Assembly (NCBI GenBank): GCA_964188305.1
Contig: OZ076893.1
Reading direction: 5' to 3' (one strand)
DNA from: Podarcis bocagei
Taxonomy: Eukaryota
DNA: 64,000 nt
The notes beneath the pieces are model-generated. The model had not been told where the DNA came from. It saw only the letters and a program-made list of their open reading frames with translations, and searched no databases. The position numbers and the translations under genes are program-made. Every line of letters begins with the position of its first letter. Position 1 is the first letter of the stretch. Of the stretch, positions 1 through 63,850 are shown piece after piece.

Positions 1-2134
1 GGCCCGCTGGAATGTGGAGTTAACCAGGGCTATTGACTGTTTGGCTCCGAAGCGCCCTCTCCGATTGCATGGAGCCCGGACAGCCCCGTGGTTTTCCACG
101 GATCTGAGGGCAATGAAACAATCGTTGAGACGGCTAGAGCGCCGGTGGCGGATAACTCATTCCGAATCTGACCGGACACAGGTTAGAGCTCAACGTCGAG
201 CCTACCAAGTGGCGATAGCGACGGCGAAGAAGAATTTCTTCACCGCCTCTATTGCATCTGCAGAAAACAGCAGCAGGAGACTTTTTCAGGTGGTTCACAA
301 TTTAGCGGAACCACCTGCAACATCGGGGCCCAGTACGGGCCACATGTTCTCCTGCAATGATTTTGCAAAGTTTTTTGCAGATAAAATCGCCCAGATTCGG
401 GAAGAAGTAGACTCCACCGTGGGAGCAGGGCCGGGGCGGGAGAGTGCTAGAGTTCTGTCTAGTCAAGTTGAGTGGGATCAATTTCAATCTGTTACCTCCG
501 AGGATGTGGACAGGCTGCTTGGACGAGTGAAACCAACCACCTGTCTCCTGGATCCTTGCCCATCCTGGCTTATAAAAGCTAGCCGGGAAGGACTGGGCGA
601 TGGGCTTCGTGGGGTGGTGAATGCTTCCCTCCGTGAGGGAGCCTTCCCAGACCCGCTGAAAGAGGCGGTTATTAAACCGCTTCTTAAAAAACCATCTTTA
701 GATGCGGCCACGATGGCCAACTATCGCCCAGTCTCAAATCTTCCATTCCTGGGCAAGGTGATTGAGCGAGTGGTTGCTGAACAACTCCAGGCACGCCTGG
801 AAGAAGCGGACCATTTGGATCCCTTCCAGTCGGGATTCAGGCCTCATCATGGGACTGAAACTGCCTTGGTCGCACTGGTTGATGATCTCCGGCGGGCTAG
901 GGACAAAGGTGAGAGCTGTTTCCTAGTTCTGCTGGATCTCTCAGCGGCGTTTGATACCATCGACCATAGCATCCTTCTGGACCGTCTTGAGGGGCTGGGA
1001 GCTGGGGGCACTGTTATACAGTGGTTCCGCTCCTTCCTCCTGGGCCGTGTTCAGAAAGTGGTGGTGGGGGATGAGTGTTCAGACCCTTGGGCCCTCACTT
1101 GTGGGGTGCCTCAGGGTTCTGTCCTCTCCCCCATGCTTTTTAACATCTATATGAAGCCGCTGGGAGAGATCATCAGGAGGTTTGGGCTGGGTGTTCATCA
1201 GTATGCGGATGACACCCAGCTCTACCTCTCTTTTAAATCAGAACCAGTGAAGGCGGTGAAGGTCCTGTGTGAGTGTCTGGAGGCGGTTGGAGGATGGATG
1301 GCGGCTAACAGATTGAGGTTGAATCCTGACAAGACAGAAGTACTGCTTTTGGGGGACAGGAGGCGGGCAGGTGTGGAGGATTCCCTGGTCCTGAATGGGG
1401 TAACTGTGCCCCTGAAGGACCAGGTGCGCAGCCTGGGAGTCATTTTGGACTCACAGCTGTCCATGGAGGCACAGGTCAAATCTGTGTCCAGGGCAGCTGT
1501 TTACCAGCTCCATCTGGTACGTAGGCTGAGACCCTATCTGCCTGCGGACTGTCTCGCCAGAGTGGTGCATGCTCTGGTTATCTCCCGCTTGGACTACTGC
1601 AATGCGCTCTACGTGGGGCTACCTTTGAAGGTGACGCGGAAACTACAACTAATCCAGAATGCGGCAGCTAGACTGGTGACTGGGAGCGGCCACCGAGACC
1701 ATATAACACCGGTCTTGAAAGACCTGCATTGGCTCCCAGTACGTTTCCGAGCACAATTCAAAGTGTTGGTGCTGACCTTTAAAGCCCTAAACGGCCTCGG
1801 TCCAGTATACCTGAAGGAGCGTCTCCACCCCCATCAGTCTGCCCGGACGCTGAGGTCCAGCGCCGAGGGCCTTCTGGCGGTTCCCTCACTGCGAGAAGCA
1901 AAGCTACAGGGAACCAGGCAGAGGGCCTTCTCGGTAGTGGCGCCCGCCCTGTGGAACGCCCTTCCAGCAGATGTCAAAGCGATAAACAACTATCTGACAT
2001 TCAGGAGACATCTTAAGGCAGCCCTGTTCAGGGAAGTTTTTAACGTGTGACATTTTACTGTATTTTTGGTTTTTATGGAAGCCGCCCAGAGTGGCTGGGG
2101 AGGCCCAGCCAGATGGGCGGGGTATAAATAATAA

Positions 2135-17875: not shown

Positions 17876-18271
17876 TAAACTTGCTAATGTATTTATAATT
17901 AATGATATATTTCCTTCCTCCTTTAGAAAAGTTATTCAATCAGCTGTTTCTCCAACTGCACCCTGCCCAATGCACACACACAACCCTCGGACACAACCTT
18001 GTCTTCCCAATGTCTACCTCACCACCTTTGGAGCAAGGTCCCTCAACCATAGGAATGAGGAATCAATGGCCCTCCAAATATAGTTGGGCTACAAGTTCCA
18101 TAATACCAGACCTTTGGTCATGCTGCCTGCGACTGATGGGAGTTGGAGTCAAGCAACTTCCGGAGGACCACAGGTTCTCCATTCCTGCTAAACGCACACA
18201 ACTGTGGAAACCCTCTCCACCACCCCACCCCCCAAGACAAAGGCACCTCCATTTTGAGACCCAAACTATGC

Positions 18272-18518
18272 TGTTATGTACTGAAGTTCTCACCCTGGGC
18301 CAGCAGGGGAATACTGTAGATAGTTATGCAAATAAGGGATCGAAAGTGACGTTCAGTGATTGGATAGTTTTAGAAAATTGTTACAGTTACATTGTACTGG
18401 AGCTCTATATAAGCAGGCTGACTGAACCCTTCAGTTCAGTTCTGTTCTGGCCTGTGAATAAACAAGAGCTGTTTGAAGAATCGCTGTGTCGTCTGATATG
18501 TTCACCCACAACTTAACA
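18272..18518 (+). mobile_element. Solo LTR, 247 bp (Gypsy-like)
   Basis: TGTTA...TAACA termini; 5-bp TSD tatgc; ATTGG, TATATAA (18406) and AATAAA (18457) in LTR order. Confidence 0.92.
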
Positions 18519-32540: not shown

Positions 32541-33135
32541 AGAGACGGGGGGAGAACAAGACCTGCTCCCTGAGATGTTTAAAAAGGCCATAGGCCTGGC
32601 TGAGGAAATGTCTTCTAGTGTTTCCAGCTATGAAGGCAATAACAGAGCGAGCATGTTCCACATTGGTCATCTGCTCTGCTGAGCATCTTAAAGATCTTAG
32701 CAAGATCATCTGAGAGTTGGACTTGACTGCCTTCTCGTACTGCTACTTTAACCCAGAAGCATTTGATGTCACCGGACTCGGTGAAATCACTGAATTTTCC
32801 AGCATTTAAGACAGTGGTACAGAGAAAAGAGACTGAAAATGAAACAGGGGACATAAGAGAGTCATTTTCCTTCCTTTTTGGTCATTGGTATCACTGCCAC
32901 TGGAACATTGTAAGTGACATCACAGCAGCAATGAGGATTGGTAAGTAAGGATATCTAAGGATCCCAGTGGAAAGGAGTATGGAAACTGCCACAATTTGCA
33001 TGTTGCTCAAGGTCAGAAATGGAAATCATGCAAGTGAAAATCAATGGTATCCACTATTGTTACTTTAGCTCACAAATGTTACATAAATACATTATTTTCT
33101 GCATTGTTCTTGACATTCGCCTTCCACTGTAATTA

Positions 33136-33367
33136 CAGTGGTACCTCGGGTTACAAACACTTTGGGTTACAGACTCCACTAACCCTAACCCGGAAGTAGT
33201 ACCTTGGGTTAAGAACTTTACTTCAGGATGAGAACAGAAATTTTGCGGTGGCGCTGTGGCGGCAGCAGGAAGCCCCATTAGCTAAAGTGGTACCTCAGGT
33301 TAAGAATGGTTTCAGGTTAAGAACAGACCTCGGGAATGAATGAAGTACGTAACCAGAGGTACCACTG
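33136..33367 (+). mobile_element. Tc1/mariner MITE (CAGTGGTACCTC family)
   Basis: TIRs and TA flanks. Confidence 0.88.
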
Positions 33368-34378
33368 TATAATAATTATTTGCATTGGTTTGGGTTATAG
33401 CCGATAGTGAGATGAATAATGTAGGTTTAGAGGAAGGCAAGCTGCAGCAGAATGGAAACAGCACTGATTGCTGCAAGCTCAGGGTGAAACAGGATGTACA
33501 CATGGAAGCAGACTTTTGGACCCAGCCACTGACTTTCAAAAGGTAGCATAGGAAGAGGCCTGTTAACTACAGAATGGAATTATTCATATTTCCATCTAAT
33601 TTGTTGAGAAGTCACTCCACCTAATATTCTACTAATGGTCTCAGGACATAATCTGAAGGCCCAATATATAGCAACCTCACTGATCCTAAGCATGCTGGGG
33701 TGATGGGTGCCTATATAGGAGACTCCCCTGGTATCCTTGAAGAACAGCAGAATATAAAACAACAATCCAAGGACAACTCAATGAATTCTTGTAAAAAAAA
33801 CCCTTTCATCTGCAGGTTATGTCATTCAGCCATACATATATAGCTCACCCTGCTTTTCAATCACACTTCTTTTACTTGATTTTCCTCTACTGTGACATAT
33901 AAACAGATAGAAGCCAAGCTCATAAAAGAAAGTGAAATATGAAGCTTTCTAAGCCTTTGCATTTGTCTATTGTAAATAGCTGCCCATCTAAAGGAGCCAC
34001 CTCAGAAACTGGAGATATCAGAGAGAATAATGATCATGTTTACTTATCCATAGGTGTTTAATGCTTTTTGGCAGTTTCCCAGATGTGGAGGCATTGGTGA
34101 GTCGGAGGCTGAATTGCTCTTTGTTTTCATGACTGCTGCTGTGATTTTACAGAAAGGTGCCTGTGAGAGTCATTCTGATGATCAAAAGCAGGTTCTCAGG
34201 AGGAGAAAAAACAAAATGAAATGTCCTGCTTGTGGGAGTGGTATACTTGTGTGACCAGTTTAGGGGGGGGGGTGAGAAAGAAAGAAAAATCACACGTTGT
34301 GGTTCTTCTTCCGTGAAATGAAATGTTATGTTATTCATACAAGTGGACAACTTTTGGTGAGCAGCTTAATTTTTAAAA

Positions 34379-35505
34379 GCATCGCAAGGCCACGTAAAAG
34401 ATTACTGCTAGGAGGAACAAGCTGGACACTGAGCAGATGGCAATGATCAGTAGACATTGACATTGTCCACCAAAGGCTTTGAGCTTTCACCTGTCCTGGA
34501 AAGGGTGTCAGTCTTAACAGCCTGGGCACTTGCCACCAGTGACAAACTCAGTGTGGCTGTGGCCATGTGCTGGTCCTGGGAGGGGGAATACCGTGAGGCG
34601 TGGTCAGAGTCCGGTCCTGGGTCGAGGGTCTGGAGACTGTCCACCAAGGGCAAAGCGGGGTCCAAAGCAAGAAGCCGGGCGTGGTCGGGAACTCCGGAAA
34701 AACAGGTCTGGGTCTGGCAGCAACAGGTTTCCAAGGACGTTGCTCCCGCAACCTGGGACTGGGCTGACTTGCCTTTATCTCCTCTGGGGCCTAGGGTGGT
34801 CCCGGCCCACAGGTGACTCGCCTCTCCTGGCCTTAAGGTGAGCATTCCTCCTGAGAGAACTTAGTTCCCTCCACCTCTCTGCCCTGAGCCTCTGCAGGTC
34901 AGGAGAGGCTGGAGGTTTACTGGACCCAGAGGTTGCCTCACCTTCCCCTGACAGGGCTGGGAGAGGAGCACCTGCAGGCAATGGGTCCTCAACCACCCCC
35001 GGAGCCAGAGTGGATTCATCTGGTGTCTGCTCCTGAGGATCCGGCACAGGTGCGGGCCCTTCAGATTCAAGGGGACTCCTGTGCAGGCTGGGATTCCTCC
35101 GGTTCAGCCTCTGAATCAGATTCCCAGGCCATCACAGGCCATGAGTGAAGGTGTGCCGTGATCTTTCACCAACACAAGGAGAGTCTGTCTGCTTCTGCCC
35201 TCCACCTTATCCAGGGCACGTGTGGTACTGATCTCCCCACTGTATAGCCCCACACGCCAAGGGCCAGTGGTCAACTCACGCATCTCATATCGCAACCATG
35301 CATTGAACCCTGAGTCAGCATCCAAGGCACGGATCTTGCCCACCATGTGTCCAGACAATACAGGAGCCACTAGAACAATTGGAGTCTCTTCTGATGACGC
35401 AGCCACTGTAGGCGCATTGTCATTCTCATCCACCACAAATACCTGAACTGTAGTGTTGCCACACAAGGAGGGCAACCCGGCATCCTTGGCCCTCACTTGG
35501 AACTC
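34379..35505 (-). pseudogene. PCDHA: Alpha-protocadherin variable-exon fragment (end of EC5, EC6, TM), disrupted by a solo LTR and a frameshift
   Basis: 35505-35137 reads EFQVRAKDAGLPSLCGNTTVQVFVVDENDNAP...IRALDADSGFNAWLRYE...VGLYSGEISTTRALD...LLVLVKDHGTPSLMA. After removing the LTR it continues TATLSLSLV...LVDNVNVY, then after a 1-nt loss at ~34449 IIAICSVSSLFLLAVIFYVALRC. These match clustered alpha-protocadherin motifs. Confidence 0.9.
34566..35136. mobile_element. Solo LTR, 571 bp (Gypsy-like), inserted in the protocadherin fragment
   Basis: Termini TGTGCTGG...CCATCACA; perfect 5-bp TSD GGCCA (34561-34565, 35137-35141); its removal restores the frame KDHGTPSLMATATL. Confidence 0.9.
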
Positions 35506-35664
35506 CGGTATAATTATCGTAATGCCATTAAGGGGGAGTCTGAGTGAAATGTATCCTGCCATTGTAATAAGAAACCGAAAGCATAGGGTCTATGGCTTAT
35601 AGTTAGAAAAATGCTTCAGCATACCCTCCAACATTTCTCTGATGAAAATAGGGATGTCCTACTC

Positions 35665-35710
<46 letters not shown>

Positions 35711-35841
35711 TCTATTATTTATATGCCACCCATCTGGCTGTGTTACACCAGCCACTCTAGGTGACTTGCAACATATATAAAAACATGACAAAACATTAAA
35801 CGACTTTCCTATACAGATGTTTTCTAAAGGTTGTATAGTTA

Positions 35842-36837
35842 CCGTATTTTTTGCTCTATAGAATCATAGAATCATAGAGTTGGAAGAGACCACAAGGGCC
35901 ATCGAGTCCAACCCCCTGCCAAGCAGGAAACACCACCAGAGCACTCCTGACATATGGTTGTCAAGCCTCTGCTTAAAGACCTCCAAAGAAGGAGACTCCA
36001 CCACACTCCTTGGCAGCAAATTCCACTGTCAAACAGCTCTTACTGTCAGGAAGTTCTTCCTAATGTTTAGGTGGAATCTTCTTTCTTGTAGTTTGGATCC
36101 ATTGCTCCGTGTCCGCTTCTCTGGAGCAGCAGAAAACAACCTTTCTCCCTCCTCTATGTGACATCCTTTTATATATTTGAACATGGCTATCATATCACCC
36201 CTTAACCTCCTCTTCTCCGGGCTAAACATGCCCAGCTCCCTTAGCCGTTCCTCATAAGGCATCGTTTCCAGGCCTTTGACCATTTTGGTTGCCCTCCTCT
36301 GGACACGTTCCAGTTTGTCAGTGCCCTTCTTGAATTGTGGTGCCCAGAACTGGACACAGTACTCCAGGTGAGGTCTGACCAGAGCAGAATATAGGACGCA
36401 CCGGACCATAGGACGCACCGGCCCATAGCAGGGGGAGAACAGGGGGATATTTTTTTTCCCTTGTTCTCCCCCTCAAAAACAAGGTGCATTCAAGAGCAGG
36501 TCGGGGAACAGTGCAAAGGCTGCTCACAGCCTTGCCGCTGCCCCCCCCCCAGCTTGTGGGGCATGGCGGTGGGGGGAAGCACTGCTTTCCCCCACCGCCA
36601 ACCTCAAAGATTCCTGAAGCCTTTGGAGCGCAGCTGCACTCCAAAGGCTTGAGGCTTCGGGGACATCCTTTGTAGCCTCAGCAGGGCAGCAGGGTGCCTT
36701 CACCCCGCCACCCTGTGGAGGCTTTCCGCAGCCATCCCGAAGCTAGAACAGCTGCAGGCTGCTATCCACAAGCCTTCGGAGCCCGCGGGAGTTCCTGCCA
36801 GACTTGCGGATAGCTGCCCTAAGCCCGGGTTGCCCAG
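35842..36837 (+). mobile_element. Tc2/pogo-like non-autonomous element (left TIR only), hosting a CR1
   Basis: TA-CCGTATTTTTTGCTCTATA resembles 5829; resumes as ggacgcaccggaccataggacgcac after the CR1; GC-rich body; right TIR not visible, TA at 36838. Confidence 0.6.
35858..36391 (-). mobile_element. 5'-truncated CR1 LINE (RT C-terminus and 3' UTR)
   Basis: [18 protein letters not shown]...[16 protein letters not shown]...[16 protein letters not shown]...NFLTVRAV; (ATTCTATG)n terminal repeat. Confidence 0.95.
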
Positions 36838-37635
36838 TACTTATCTATTTTAGTCGGGGGTTACACAACTCCATACCCTCCAACATTACTCCAATGAATG
36901 TAGGGACTTCCTAAGGAAAAGCGAGACATTTGGGGATCAAATCAGAAACTTGGATGGCTTCTGTAAATCTGAAACTGTCCCTGGAAAATAGGGACACTTG
37001 GAAGGTCAGCTTCAGTAGACTACTTGGAAAATTGGAAGCATAGGAATGATAAGCCTGAGGGTGACAGATGCCAAATTTGAGGTAAAAAGATAAGAGATGT
37101 TTTATTTAGAGCAAATTAAACAATTGACAACAGACTCTGGCATGCTAACAAGTGCTGTGTGCTTTTCTTTCATAGACTTTGCCAGAGGTTTTTCCAGAAA
37201 CCTTTCTCCATTCTGGAGAATGCTTTGTTGTGTTAGGTCAAGGAAAATGTGTAGTATGTGCTACTGTCAAAGACTAGTGAAACATGGTTGCCATTGTTAT
37301 TAAAATGCTTTTGTTTCCCCAGCTTGTGAAATTCATTGGGCTTGTGAGTCGTCACCTGCTGCTGCTAAGTAATGGTTTCTGGCCAATTTTAGCTCTGGCA
37401 AGATTGCCATAGATCAGGCCTCAATCCTGAAGAATTTACAGTTGGACGTTAGATGTGAAAGGAGATGGGGAGAGGAAATCACAAGTGATGGGAACATATA
37501 GTCTGGGAAGCATAGAGAAGGGGAAAGTATATCAGAGGTGCACAGTGGCTGGTTTTTGGTTATCAGTTTTTGAAGGTACAGAAGAGCCTTAAGGAAAAAA
37601 GTGTGAAGTAGATTTAGTGGGCAGTTGTGTGACTA

Positions 37636-61360: not shown

Positions 61361-63850
61361 CTACCCCTTGTACAAACAGAGAGAAAAGAGAGGCAAAGTG
61401 TTTCAGTGCTGATGGATTCTTCAGTTTCAGACTGACTGTGCTAAATTTAAAATTCAGAGACCAGCAACAGTCAGAGGAACAGAACTGAGCTACTACACTA
61501 TTTAATGCCAGATGTGCTGAATGAATGCTGAATTAACAGTCAGCAGTTAGTAAGTTGTTCAGCAATTTAACATAAATTTGCACTCATTTGCATGGAGGGA
61601 AAAGCTCCTTTCATGTGCCACCATTATTGCTCTGCAACCCTACATCCAAAGACATTAGGACAAGGTGAAAGATTCCTGATGCCACTTTAAATTCTAATCC
61701 ACTAATTCACAAATTCCCCAATCCCTCAGGGATTCCCTGACATGGGTTGGAGTCATGGATGGGGCAAGAACAGCATGGAAAAGGAGGGGGATAGCTATGC
61801 CACCAAATCCTAACTTCCCCCATTTCAAAAACACAATAGAAATCTATAGATCATGGGAAAGACAAAATAAGACTCATTTTATCCCAACTCCCAAGCTGGG
61901 GACCATTTGAATGCTTGGGGCAGCCCACAGACATTAACTACCTCATCCTAGTAGGAATGGGAATACAAGGTTGTTCTGTAACCAACAAAAGATGCAAAAT
62001 CTTGGTGGCCTTCTGCCTAATTCGAGAAAGGGCTAATCCAAGCTCAAACTTCATGTAGGCCATCAAGGTTTCAGTAAATTGTTATTTTCCAATTATAAAT
62101 ATGACTTAGGCAGGACATGTATTTATATCACCAGGGATTTTGATTCACCACTCAGGCAATTTCTAGAGTCACCCATCTTGACTCGTCATTGCCAAATAAA
62201 TGGGATAACTTCAAGATGAATCTCTGCCTGCTTTCTCCTATTCACAGTCCCTTTTTAATACATTGTATGACAGGGGAAATCATCCAGCTAGTTCTTTTGA
62301 GCTTTTCCTAGCTAGTGCTAGCTAAGCTGTCACCTTGTGTTTGTTTGCCAAAGAGATGCTCTTCCCTCCAAGGGGAGATCTGCTGCCTGCTGGCGATAGA
62401 GATGTAAATGGGGAGGACACCACAAGTGTGAAAGGACATGCAGCACATAAGCTGAGATATGAGAGAGCCAATTAAGAGGGTCTAAAGGAGTGAAGGGGGA
62501 ATGGCAACAATTATGAGTTTGGTTCTGAGAATCATCTGAAGCGTGCTTATTTATTTCGAGCACTCTACGAGAGAATGGCCAGTCTGAGAGAGAGGAGAAA
62601 TGAAAAGCCACTCTGAAGGGGAAGCCAAGGTTTTCGTAGTTCTGTCGTAGTTGCATCAGTGTCAACACAGTCTTAGAAAAGTTAATTCCTGGACACTCAA
62701 GAGCTTCTGACATTCCTGATACAACACCTTTGGGCAGAGTTGGGGAGGTTATAATTGTTAGGCTACAACTCCCATCAGCCTCACCTAACATGGTCAATGG
62801 TCTGGGTGTGCCGGTTTCTTTGAGGAAAGCCATGACTGTTAAAGTAGAATGATACTGATTGAAATGGGGCCAAAGAAAAGAGGGATTAGAATAGACACAG
62901 AAAGAAATGGGTGGAACACTTTTGACTCAGGCTCCGCCCACTGCCTACATGTAGCCCTCCAGTAGATGACATTTGAGGGAATTCAGACTTTAACTGAAGA
63001 AAAGAGGAGCCTTGTAGCTCTGAGGAAATACAGCCTTACAGTTGTGTGAAATTAAAATCCCTCCAGAAGCTTTATGAGTTGGACAAATGCATCACATTTG
63101 CTCGTAAAATGAGCCGCATATTTGTATTCACCTGCTGTAAATTGTCTTTAAGAACGAACAACAACCCTAGGCAAAAATGCTTTTTTTGGAAGCAGAACAG
63201 TGCATCGTTTGTACAAAATGGGCCTTTATCAATCCACAGATTGCAGAAAGCAAACTTATCAAAATGTCCCGTATGTGTTTGCACACCATTATGGCAGAGC
63301 TTAGCAAACAACTGGATGTTTACCTTCCCAATTAATTGCATTCTTAACCTTCCTAAATGGGCAGAAAAAATAGCAATCCTGTATCACATGGCTCTGTAAA
63401 CCAGATTTCATCTAGTTGTGGAAATAGGTGGCAGCTAATTAAGCAGTGCAGTAAATGAATTTTTATCTGATGTATTTATAGCCATTAGGTGCATTGCTAT
63501 TAACAAGGTTTTTTATCATGTATTTTCATGCCTTGTAGCTCAATAAATTTCATAAAGCATAGCATATAAAAAAGAAAGAGAGAAAGATTATAAACTTTGC
63601 AATAAACTGTCATTCAATTAATTTACAATGGTCTTTTAATTATAAGACTGCAAGTATTTATTTCATTATCATCATCATCATCATCATCTGGTGGCATATT
63701 CAGTGAATTTCCAGAAAATCAATGGACTGAAGTTAGTCATCACACACCCACATACACCATTCACCCACAACATTCATATAAATCAGTATTTCCCAACCTT
63801 TCTCTGACCGTGGCCCCCTTCCAACCTTGTTTCCTTCCTGTGGCCCCCCT

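Follow-up and report, generated by a model that had tools for sequence, protein, structure and literature searches.

An ectopic fragment of an alpha-type protocadherin exon in Podarcis bocagei, split by a solo LTR and probably captured during break repair

The window analyzed here is a stretch of 64,000 nucleotides of Podarcis bocagei contig OZ076893.1 (assembly GCA_964188305.1). On its minus strand, positions 35508..35137 followed by 34560..34379 encode the last strand of EC5, the whole of EC6, the linker, and the TM helix of an alpha-type clustered protocadherin. Variable exons of alpha-protocadherins are single exons of ~2.4 kb (~800 codons) arrayed in one cluster; the present fragment (~554 bp) corresponds to the middle of such an exon and lies inside single-copy DNA. 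The features of the locus are the following.

34296..34378, no strand: left flank, single-copy, no protocadherin homology, ends ...TTAATTTTTAAAA
34447..34379, minus strand: TM helix and first cytoplasmic residues, 23 codons, IIAICSVSSLFLLAVIFYVALRC; homology stops after the Cys codon
34448..34449, minus strand: frameshift site, the 2 bases left of a Leu codon; in relatives, a G is put in behind 34449 on the plus strand
34560..34450, minus strand: end of EC6 and juxtamembrane linker, 37 codons, TATLSLS...VDNVNVY; TATLSLSLVASAQAVKTDTLSRTGESSKPLVDNVNVY
34561..34565 (left) and 35137-35141 (right), no strand: target-site duplication of the LTR element, GGCCA, perfect 5 bp
34566..35136, no strand: solo LTR, 571 bp, 61% GC, TGTGCTGG...CCATCACA, TG..CA termini with 7/8 bases inverted
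35137..35508, minus strand: upstream piece, with the last strand of EC5 (L-EFQVRAKDAGLPSL), the DENDNAP linker, and most of EC6, ends ...DHGTPSLMA
35505..35137, minus strand: coding part of the upstream piece, 123 codons, EFQVRAKDAG...GTPSLMA; EFQVRAKDAGLPSLCGNTTVQVFVVDENDNAP...DADSGFNAWLRYE...LVLVKDHGTPSLMA
35509..35619, no strand: right flank, single-copy, no protocadherin homology; high-copy repeats from 35620

For comparison, Logan contigs of four runs were used, which represent four lizard species coded A, B, D, and E; species A (run X2) is the species of the window.

The first-pass annotation had stated that removing the 571-bp LTR together with one GGCCA and adding one base at ~34449 gives ~184 stop-free codons, and both the sequence and a script agree with it. 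Once 34566-35136 and one GGCCA are taken out, ...SLMA joins TATL... in exact frame, and with the broken codon counted as X the three pieces of the fragment yield 184 codons and zero stops. Because alpha-named relatives align colinearly on the three pieces, the LTR interrupted what had been one coding sequence and removed nothing from it, and a single-base deletion accounts for the frame break at 34449/34450; the extra base at 34450 is carried by 3-5 contigs in each of the four runs. The proposed coverage of the end of EC5, EC6, and the full TM helix is borne out by translation, Pfam, PDB, and tblastn. A complete variable exon would hold a signal peptide, EC1-EC6, TM, tail, and splice donor in one frame. 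The fragment has 184 codons, an LTR insertion, and a 1-base deletion, and signal peptide, EC1-4, cytoplasmic tail, and splice donor are all absent from it.

As for the protein family, the large piece matches the Pfam Cadherin domain (PF00028) with E=1.2e-9 and 38.8 bits (cutoff 28.8), and the calcium motifs DENDNAP and DADSG (DxNDN / DAD type) are both present in the fragment. Matches to EC5/EC6 of protocadherins in PDB reach E=5e-38, the best local stretch being residues 499-625 of PcdhgammaB4 (EC5/EC6 boundary and EC6); to our knowledge, no alpha EC6 structure exists for comparison. In a word search with the 148-residue piece against proteins of 81-259 residues, those named protocadherin alpha by their source show 52-62% identity, and the best match is a gecko fragment (P0001) with 77%. 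According to tblastn, residues 5-104 of the gecko protein align to 35505-35206 at 77%, and residues 1-117, 116-155, and 156-179 of P0002 align to 35475-35137, 34566-34450, and 34450-34379, respectively. The TM piece (34447..34379) is 83% identical to residues 130-153 of P0001 and 67% identical to residues 156-179 of P0002. The membrane segment ...LV.VNVYLIIAIC.VSSL...ALRC is common to the window and the alpha-named proteins, and the alpha-type juxtamembrane/TM pattern (ATAT..L.SLV...VNVYLIIAIC.VSSL...ALRC) is found, with P0002, P0003, P0005, P0007, and the gecko P0001 colinear. On the basis of this colinear alignment, which extends over all three pieces and includes the membrane segment, the fragment is identified as a piece of an alpha-type variable exon, as had been suggested at first sight. 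The whole-library search returned mostly giant multi-repeat cadherins and one close match (P0011, a fused model of 3002 residues in which EC6 occurs eight times, at 63-73% identity); it gave no normal-length protein close enough to lead to wall-lizard alpha proteins.

LTR-free relatives carry a single GGCCA, and their joint 34560>35137 skips 576 positions (571 + 5) in all four runs. The LTR belongs to a high-copy family, with a summed contig depth that exceeds the depth of the flanks 100- to 10,000-fold and ~30-95 distinct contigs per site per run. No TATA or AATAAA motif is recognizable in it, the window has no second copy of it, and no retroviral ORF (gag/pol) lies nearby. Its right junction is crossed by a contig in species D, and among the contigs listed for species B and E none crosses an LTR junction. 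Because the GGCCA duplication lies within the coding frame, the LTR must, on this evidence, have come after the exon copy, which is the order first proposed; all but one LTR of the element were presumably lost through LTR-LTR recombination. The sole reverse-transcriptase ORF of the window belongs to a LINE, 32 kb from the LTR. It is an open frame of 678-682 codons that enters from the left edge (2-2047, plus strand), matches RVT_1 with 1.1e-37, is of LINE type, and looks intact there.

Concerning the limits of the fragment, originally set at 34379 and 35505, the left one stands and the right one shifts to ~35508. Protein alignments extend from EFQV (35505) to ALRC (34379). Base 35507, however, is G in the window's species and A in species B, D, and E, where the minus-strand codon is CTG and encodes the Leu found in the paralogs (LLEFQV). 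Because this A restores the paralog residue in three other species, ~35508 rather than 35505 is taken as the right breakpoint. The G is a lineage-specific change in the window's species, turning Leu into Pro at the last homologous codon, which accounts for the earlier boundary. The ends of the contigs support the two breakpoints as well: own-locus contigs end at 35506 in the window's species, and left-flank contigs end at 34408-34413, 30-35 nt inside the fragment, a depth to which those of species B, D, and E enter it. Such ends would be branch points of a 31-mer assembly graph if a paralog is identical from 34379 up to ~35506.

Paralog contigs stop short of both flanks, and both immediate flanks are at unique-sequence depth in 4 of 4 runs (bin 35514-35600 for the right one). 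The unique depth of the flanks and tblastn both agree with the initial observation that homology ends abruptly, with no EC1-4 and no variable tail. The cytoplasmic residues that follow ALRC in relatives (QSEEK... in gecko, SA.P.EG...CSSAVGSW in mammals) are matched nowhere in the window. Upstream of EFQV, the window's AGYISLRLPL was set against the paralogs' SGKVYALQPL and rejected as homology, with 3 identities in 18 residues and no paralog contig aligning there. A duplication at an inversion breakpoint is ruled out, since exon sequence continues on neither side of the fragment. Also in line with the first-pass annotation, neither a clear target-site duplication nor poly(A) was found: the flanks share just the word TAATT, away from the junctions, and the 3' junction, which reads ...CGATGC followed by TTTTAAAAATTAAGC, has no A-tract. 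No terminal inverted repeats bracket the fragment.

Further protocadherin, EC1-4, or constant-region sequence was searched for by tblastn with the pieces and seven protocadherin proteins, and none was found in the 64-kb window, as had been claimed of cadherin sequence in general. A weak repeated match at 62159-62281 (E 0.4-4.8) is due to chance. When the 300 longest stop-free stretches in the window are compared with Pfam, the only credible matches are the LINE reverse transcriptase and the cadherin of the fragment; a match to ABC_trans_CmpB (6.8e-5) was discarded as a low-complexity artifact with no credible ORF attached. The longest non-transposon ORF of the window is a 204-codon ATG-to-stop frame at 17902-18516 (plus strand), with no Pfam match and a non-coding-like composition.

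Several other elements were noted in the window. Nested very-high-copy repeats at 35620-36913 start 111 bp to the right of the fragment. They include an (AAT)15 tract at 35665-35709 and a 42-nt word at 35620 that recurs at 36872 (83%); in other genomic copies 35842 directly precedes 35620, i.e., the sequence goes back 223, so that the order found here is a rearranged version of that in the repeat family. A 17-bp tandem duplication (ATAGGACGCACCGGACC, 2.2 copies) lies at 36391-36428, and the interval 36541-36654 has G/C-rich near-perfect palindromes at 36564-36600 and 36613-36654. To the left of the fragment, a MITE-like unit at 33134-33369 has 21-nt inverted ends (TACAGTGGTACCTCGGGTTAC / GTAACCAGAGGTACCACTGTA, 95%) and an interior of ~194 nt with three copies of a 22-nt motif.

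According to index coordinates, taken as given, the protocadherin cluster lies 11.76-12.0 Mb upstream on the same chromosome, with gamma-b exons/promoters 11.996, 11.858, and 11.814 Mb and gamma-c6/c7 11.761 Mb before the start of the window. Because the order from gamma-b to gamma-c runs with rising index coordinate, these positions imply that the cluster is on the plus strand and that alpha is yet further upstream, which places the fragment at least 12 Mb from its source and in inverted orientation. A cluster exon would stand in a tandem array upstream of the constant exons, and the window has no neighboring variable or constant exons. By index distance, and with no other protocadherin exon in the window, the fragment is thus an ectopic copy, inverted with respect to the cluster, as first proposed. 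An exon that decayed in place, left over from a protocadherin gene or a part of the cluster once located here, would fit with window and cluster being on the same chromosome and with the 14 pseudogenes of the anole cluster (PMC2764143). We nevertheless hold it to be very improbable: the cluster is ~12 Mb away by index coordinates rather than around or next to the window, the 64 kb contain no EC1-4, tail, promoter, or neighboring exons, and a 95-97% identity to one living paralog, with 79-84% to the rest, misfits an old relic.

Regarding the lizard contigs, those of the window's species show 0 differences in 896 nt at the locus. In species B, D, and E, contigs that differ from the window by 1-2% bridge the flank-fragment junctions, one contig of species D bridging the right junction over 35455-35642. 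Because contigs of other species cross the junctions, the insertion is taken to be real and older than the split of these species; four or more related species of lizard carry the fragment. The suspicion of an assembly chimera, likewise raised at the outset, or of contamination can practically be dismissed, given that the left, right, and LTR junctions are crossed by contigs of independent studies and four species. With all four species carrying the fragment, no empty site exists among them.

In every run there is one LTR-free contig that joins 34560 to 35137 and has the missing base, which bears out the earlier expectation of a donor-like relative in the same genome. It differs from the window in 5 of 131 bases in species A, 6 of 253 in B, and 11 of 313 in E, and its alignment stops at 34450. 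In the window's species this contig is judged to be a paralog and not an empty allele, because it is far too diverged (5/131 vs 0/896 at the locus). The LTR-free relative is 95-97% identical to the fragment and the remaining paralogs are 79-84% identical (16-21% diverged); it is likely the donor exon by its sequence, although it could instead be a second ectopic copy. The more distant paralogs number 5-13 contigs per site. The protocadherin cluster of the green anole has 17 alpha genes and 14 pseudogenes (PMC2764143), and the paralog contigs would fit an alpha subcluster of anole size. At sites 35208, 35279, 35306, and 35325, the paralog contigs share, without exception or nearly so, a base that differs from the window's, the pattern to be expected if these changes arose in the dead copy.

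The divergence from the LTR-free contigs is uneven. The linker (34450-34560) shows 0-1 differences per 111 nt (99-100% identity) and the EC6 part (35137-35338) is 4-5% diverged (95-96%); the difference is marginally significant, with P ~0.03-0.06 according to a simple binomial in which the species are not independent. Chance may explain it, as may a contig of mosaic origin or gene conversion that took place later between exons of the cluster. Overall, the copy is ~3-4% diverged from its closest relative versus 1-2% for the orthologous flanks, which suggests, without calibration, that it is ~2-3 times older than these species splits. With four or more species sharing the copy and a divergence of this size, its initial dating as fairly recent was too strong.

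Taken together, the fragment is a non-functional partial ectopic copy of one alpha-type variable exon, in our estimation probably captured as a break-repair patch. A short patch, taken from the DNA of the exon or from cDNA of its transcript, would have been captured at a germline double-strand break closed by end joining, which would make it a class 2 templated sequence insertion. An LTR retrotransposon then entered the EC6 part, making the 5-bp GGCCA duplication, and presumably shrank to a solo LTR via LTR-LTR recombination; the fragment would have drifted neutrally since. Class 2 templated insertions are defined by the lack of target duplication, poly(A), and transposon ends (PMC5110952), and the fragment is indeed a short insert from a distant locus with none of the three. 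Of the three mechanisms named at first (DNA-break capture, transduction, and truncated retrocopy), the evidence narrows the choice toward break capture, short of proof.

An RNA copy of an alpha-protocadherin transcript made by LINE machinery, either as a truncated retrocopy, by template switch, or in an endonuclease-independent event, is unlikely overall. The fragment lies within a single exon, which makes an RNA template possible, the A/T-rich TTTTAAAA at its 3' junction resembles an L1 nick site, and the intact LINE reverse-transcriptase ORF of the window indicates that such elements live in the genome. However, poly(A) and target-site duplication are both absent, and the copy ends after ALRC, just past the TM helix and ~90 codons before the splice donor, with no constant exons or 3' UTR. 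The downstream flank is moreover single-copy and has no fused LINE or SINE 3' end. With poly(A), target duplication, and the 3' portion of the mRNA all missing, a standard LINE-made retrocopy is thus unlikely; the A/T-rich junction would to some degree be compatible with a LINE-related event of endonuclease type.

We assign a similarly low probability to the idea that a larger block was duplicated, transposed, or transduced (segmental duplication, DNA transposon, or Helitron) and that later deletions trimmed it to ~550 bp. With no empty site among the four species, the size of the original insert is not fixed, and the inserted DNA could once have been longer and trimmed later; the right flank also soon meets the nested high-copy repeats (from 35620). 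Both adjoining flanks, however, are single-copy with no protocadherin homology, no terminal inverted repeats surround the fragment, and trimming on two sides to clean ends inside the exon costs two extra events. Capture by a transposon in particular is unlikely, given the single-copy flanks and the absence of terminal repeats.

Finally, the fragment might have been put to use, as an exon of a new transcript (an ATG-started ORF of 148 codons spans 35562..35116) or as a regulatory element. It is kept in four species, and zero stop codons have arisen in it, the LTR and one frameshift aside; ~17 substitutions in 184 codons, however, predict <1 stop, so the absence of stops carries no weight. The 148-codon ORF lacks a signal peptide and reads on into the LTR, none of the 81-259-residue proteins in a set of 5.8 billion matches it above 77%, and the stretch is found in no run on record as RNA. 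Reuse is hence hardly credible to us, and the preferred reading remains that of a patch captured during break repair. As a more specific version of it, the fragment would be a fossil, fixed in the germline, of a templated patch whose source was an alpha exon under active transcription or broken, pasted inverted into a break 12 Mb off on the same chromosome; we regard this as quite doubtful. If further intrachromosomal patches from the cluster exist, they would point to the cluster as a preferred donor in lizard germ cells, via fragility or long-range contacts.

The locus is ordinary genomic debris, a gene fragment that was inserted, is dead, and later received what is now a solo LTR. It carries little weight for biology, as the fragment cannot make a protocadherin and shows no sign of use. 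For annotators it is a warning that a cadherin-like ORF is here a pseudogene fragment and not a hidden gene. The fragment and then the LTR provide a clean, datable insertion marker for wall-lizard relationships, and the locus documents, in a non-human vertebrate, a fixed gene-fragment patch without the hallmarks of retrotransposition.

Among known systems, class 2 templated insertions (Onozawa & Aplan, PMC5110952) share with the fragment a sub-kilobase piece of a distant locus set in unrelated single-copy DNA, an intact donor, and the absence of poly(A), target-site duplication, and transposon ends. Those insertions, however, were described in humans as polymorphisms and in cell lines, whereas the lizard fragment is fixed across several species. 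Half of the pseudogenes within the anole cluster carry a single-base indel (PMC2764143), like the lizard fragment. With alpha variable exons it has the alpha-type EC6, linker, and TM sequence in common; it differs from these exons and the in-cluster pseudogenes in having 184 of ~800 codons, in lying ~12 Mb outside the cluster and inverted, and in lacking promoter, signal peptide, and splice donor. As for the insert, it agrees with solo LTRs of LTR retrotransposons and endogenous retroviruses in its inverted TG..CA ends, 5-bp duplication, many copies, and absence of an internal region, but unlike them it has no recognizable TATA or AATAAA. Finally, NUMT-like and gene-fragment captures, as well as non-processed pseudogene fragments, are likewise dead pieces of functional sequence dispersed by break repair, although in this case they come from a multigene cluster that is nuclear, specific to neurons, and located on the same chromosome.
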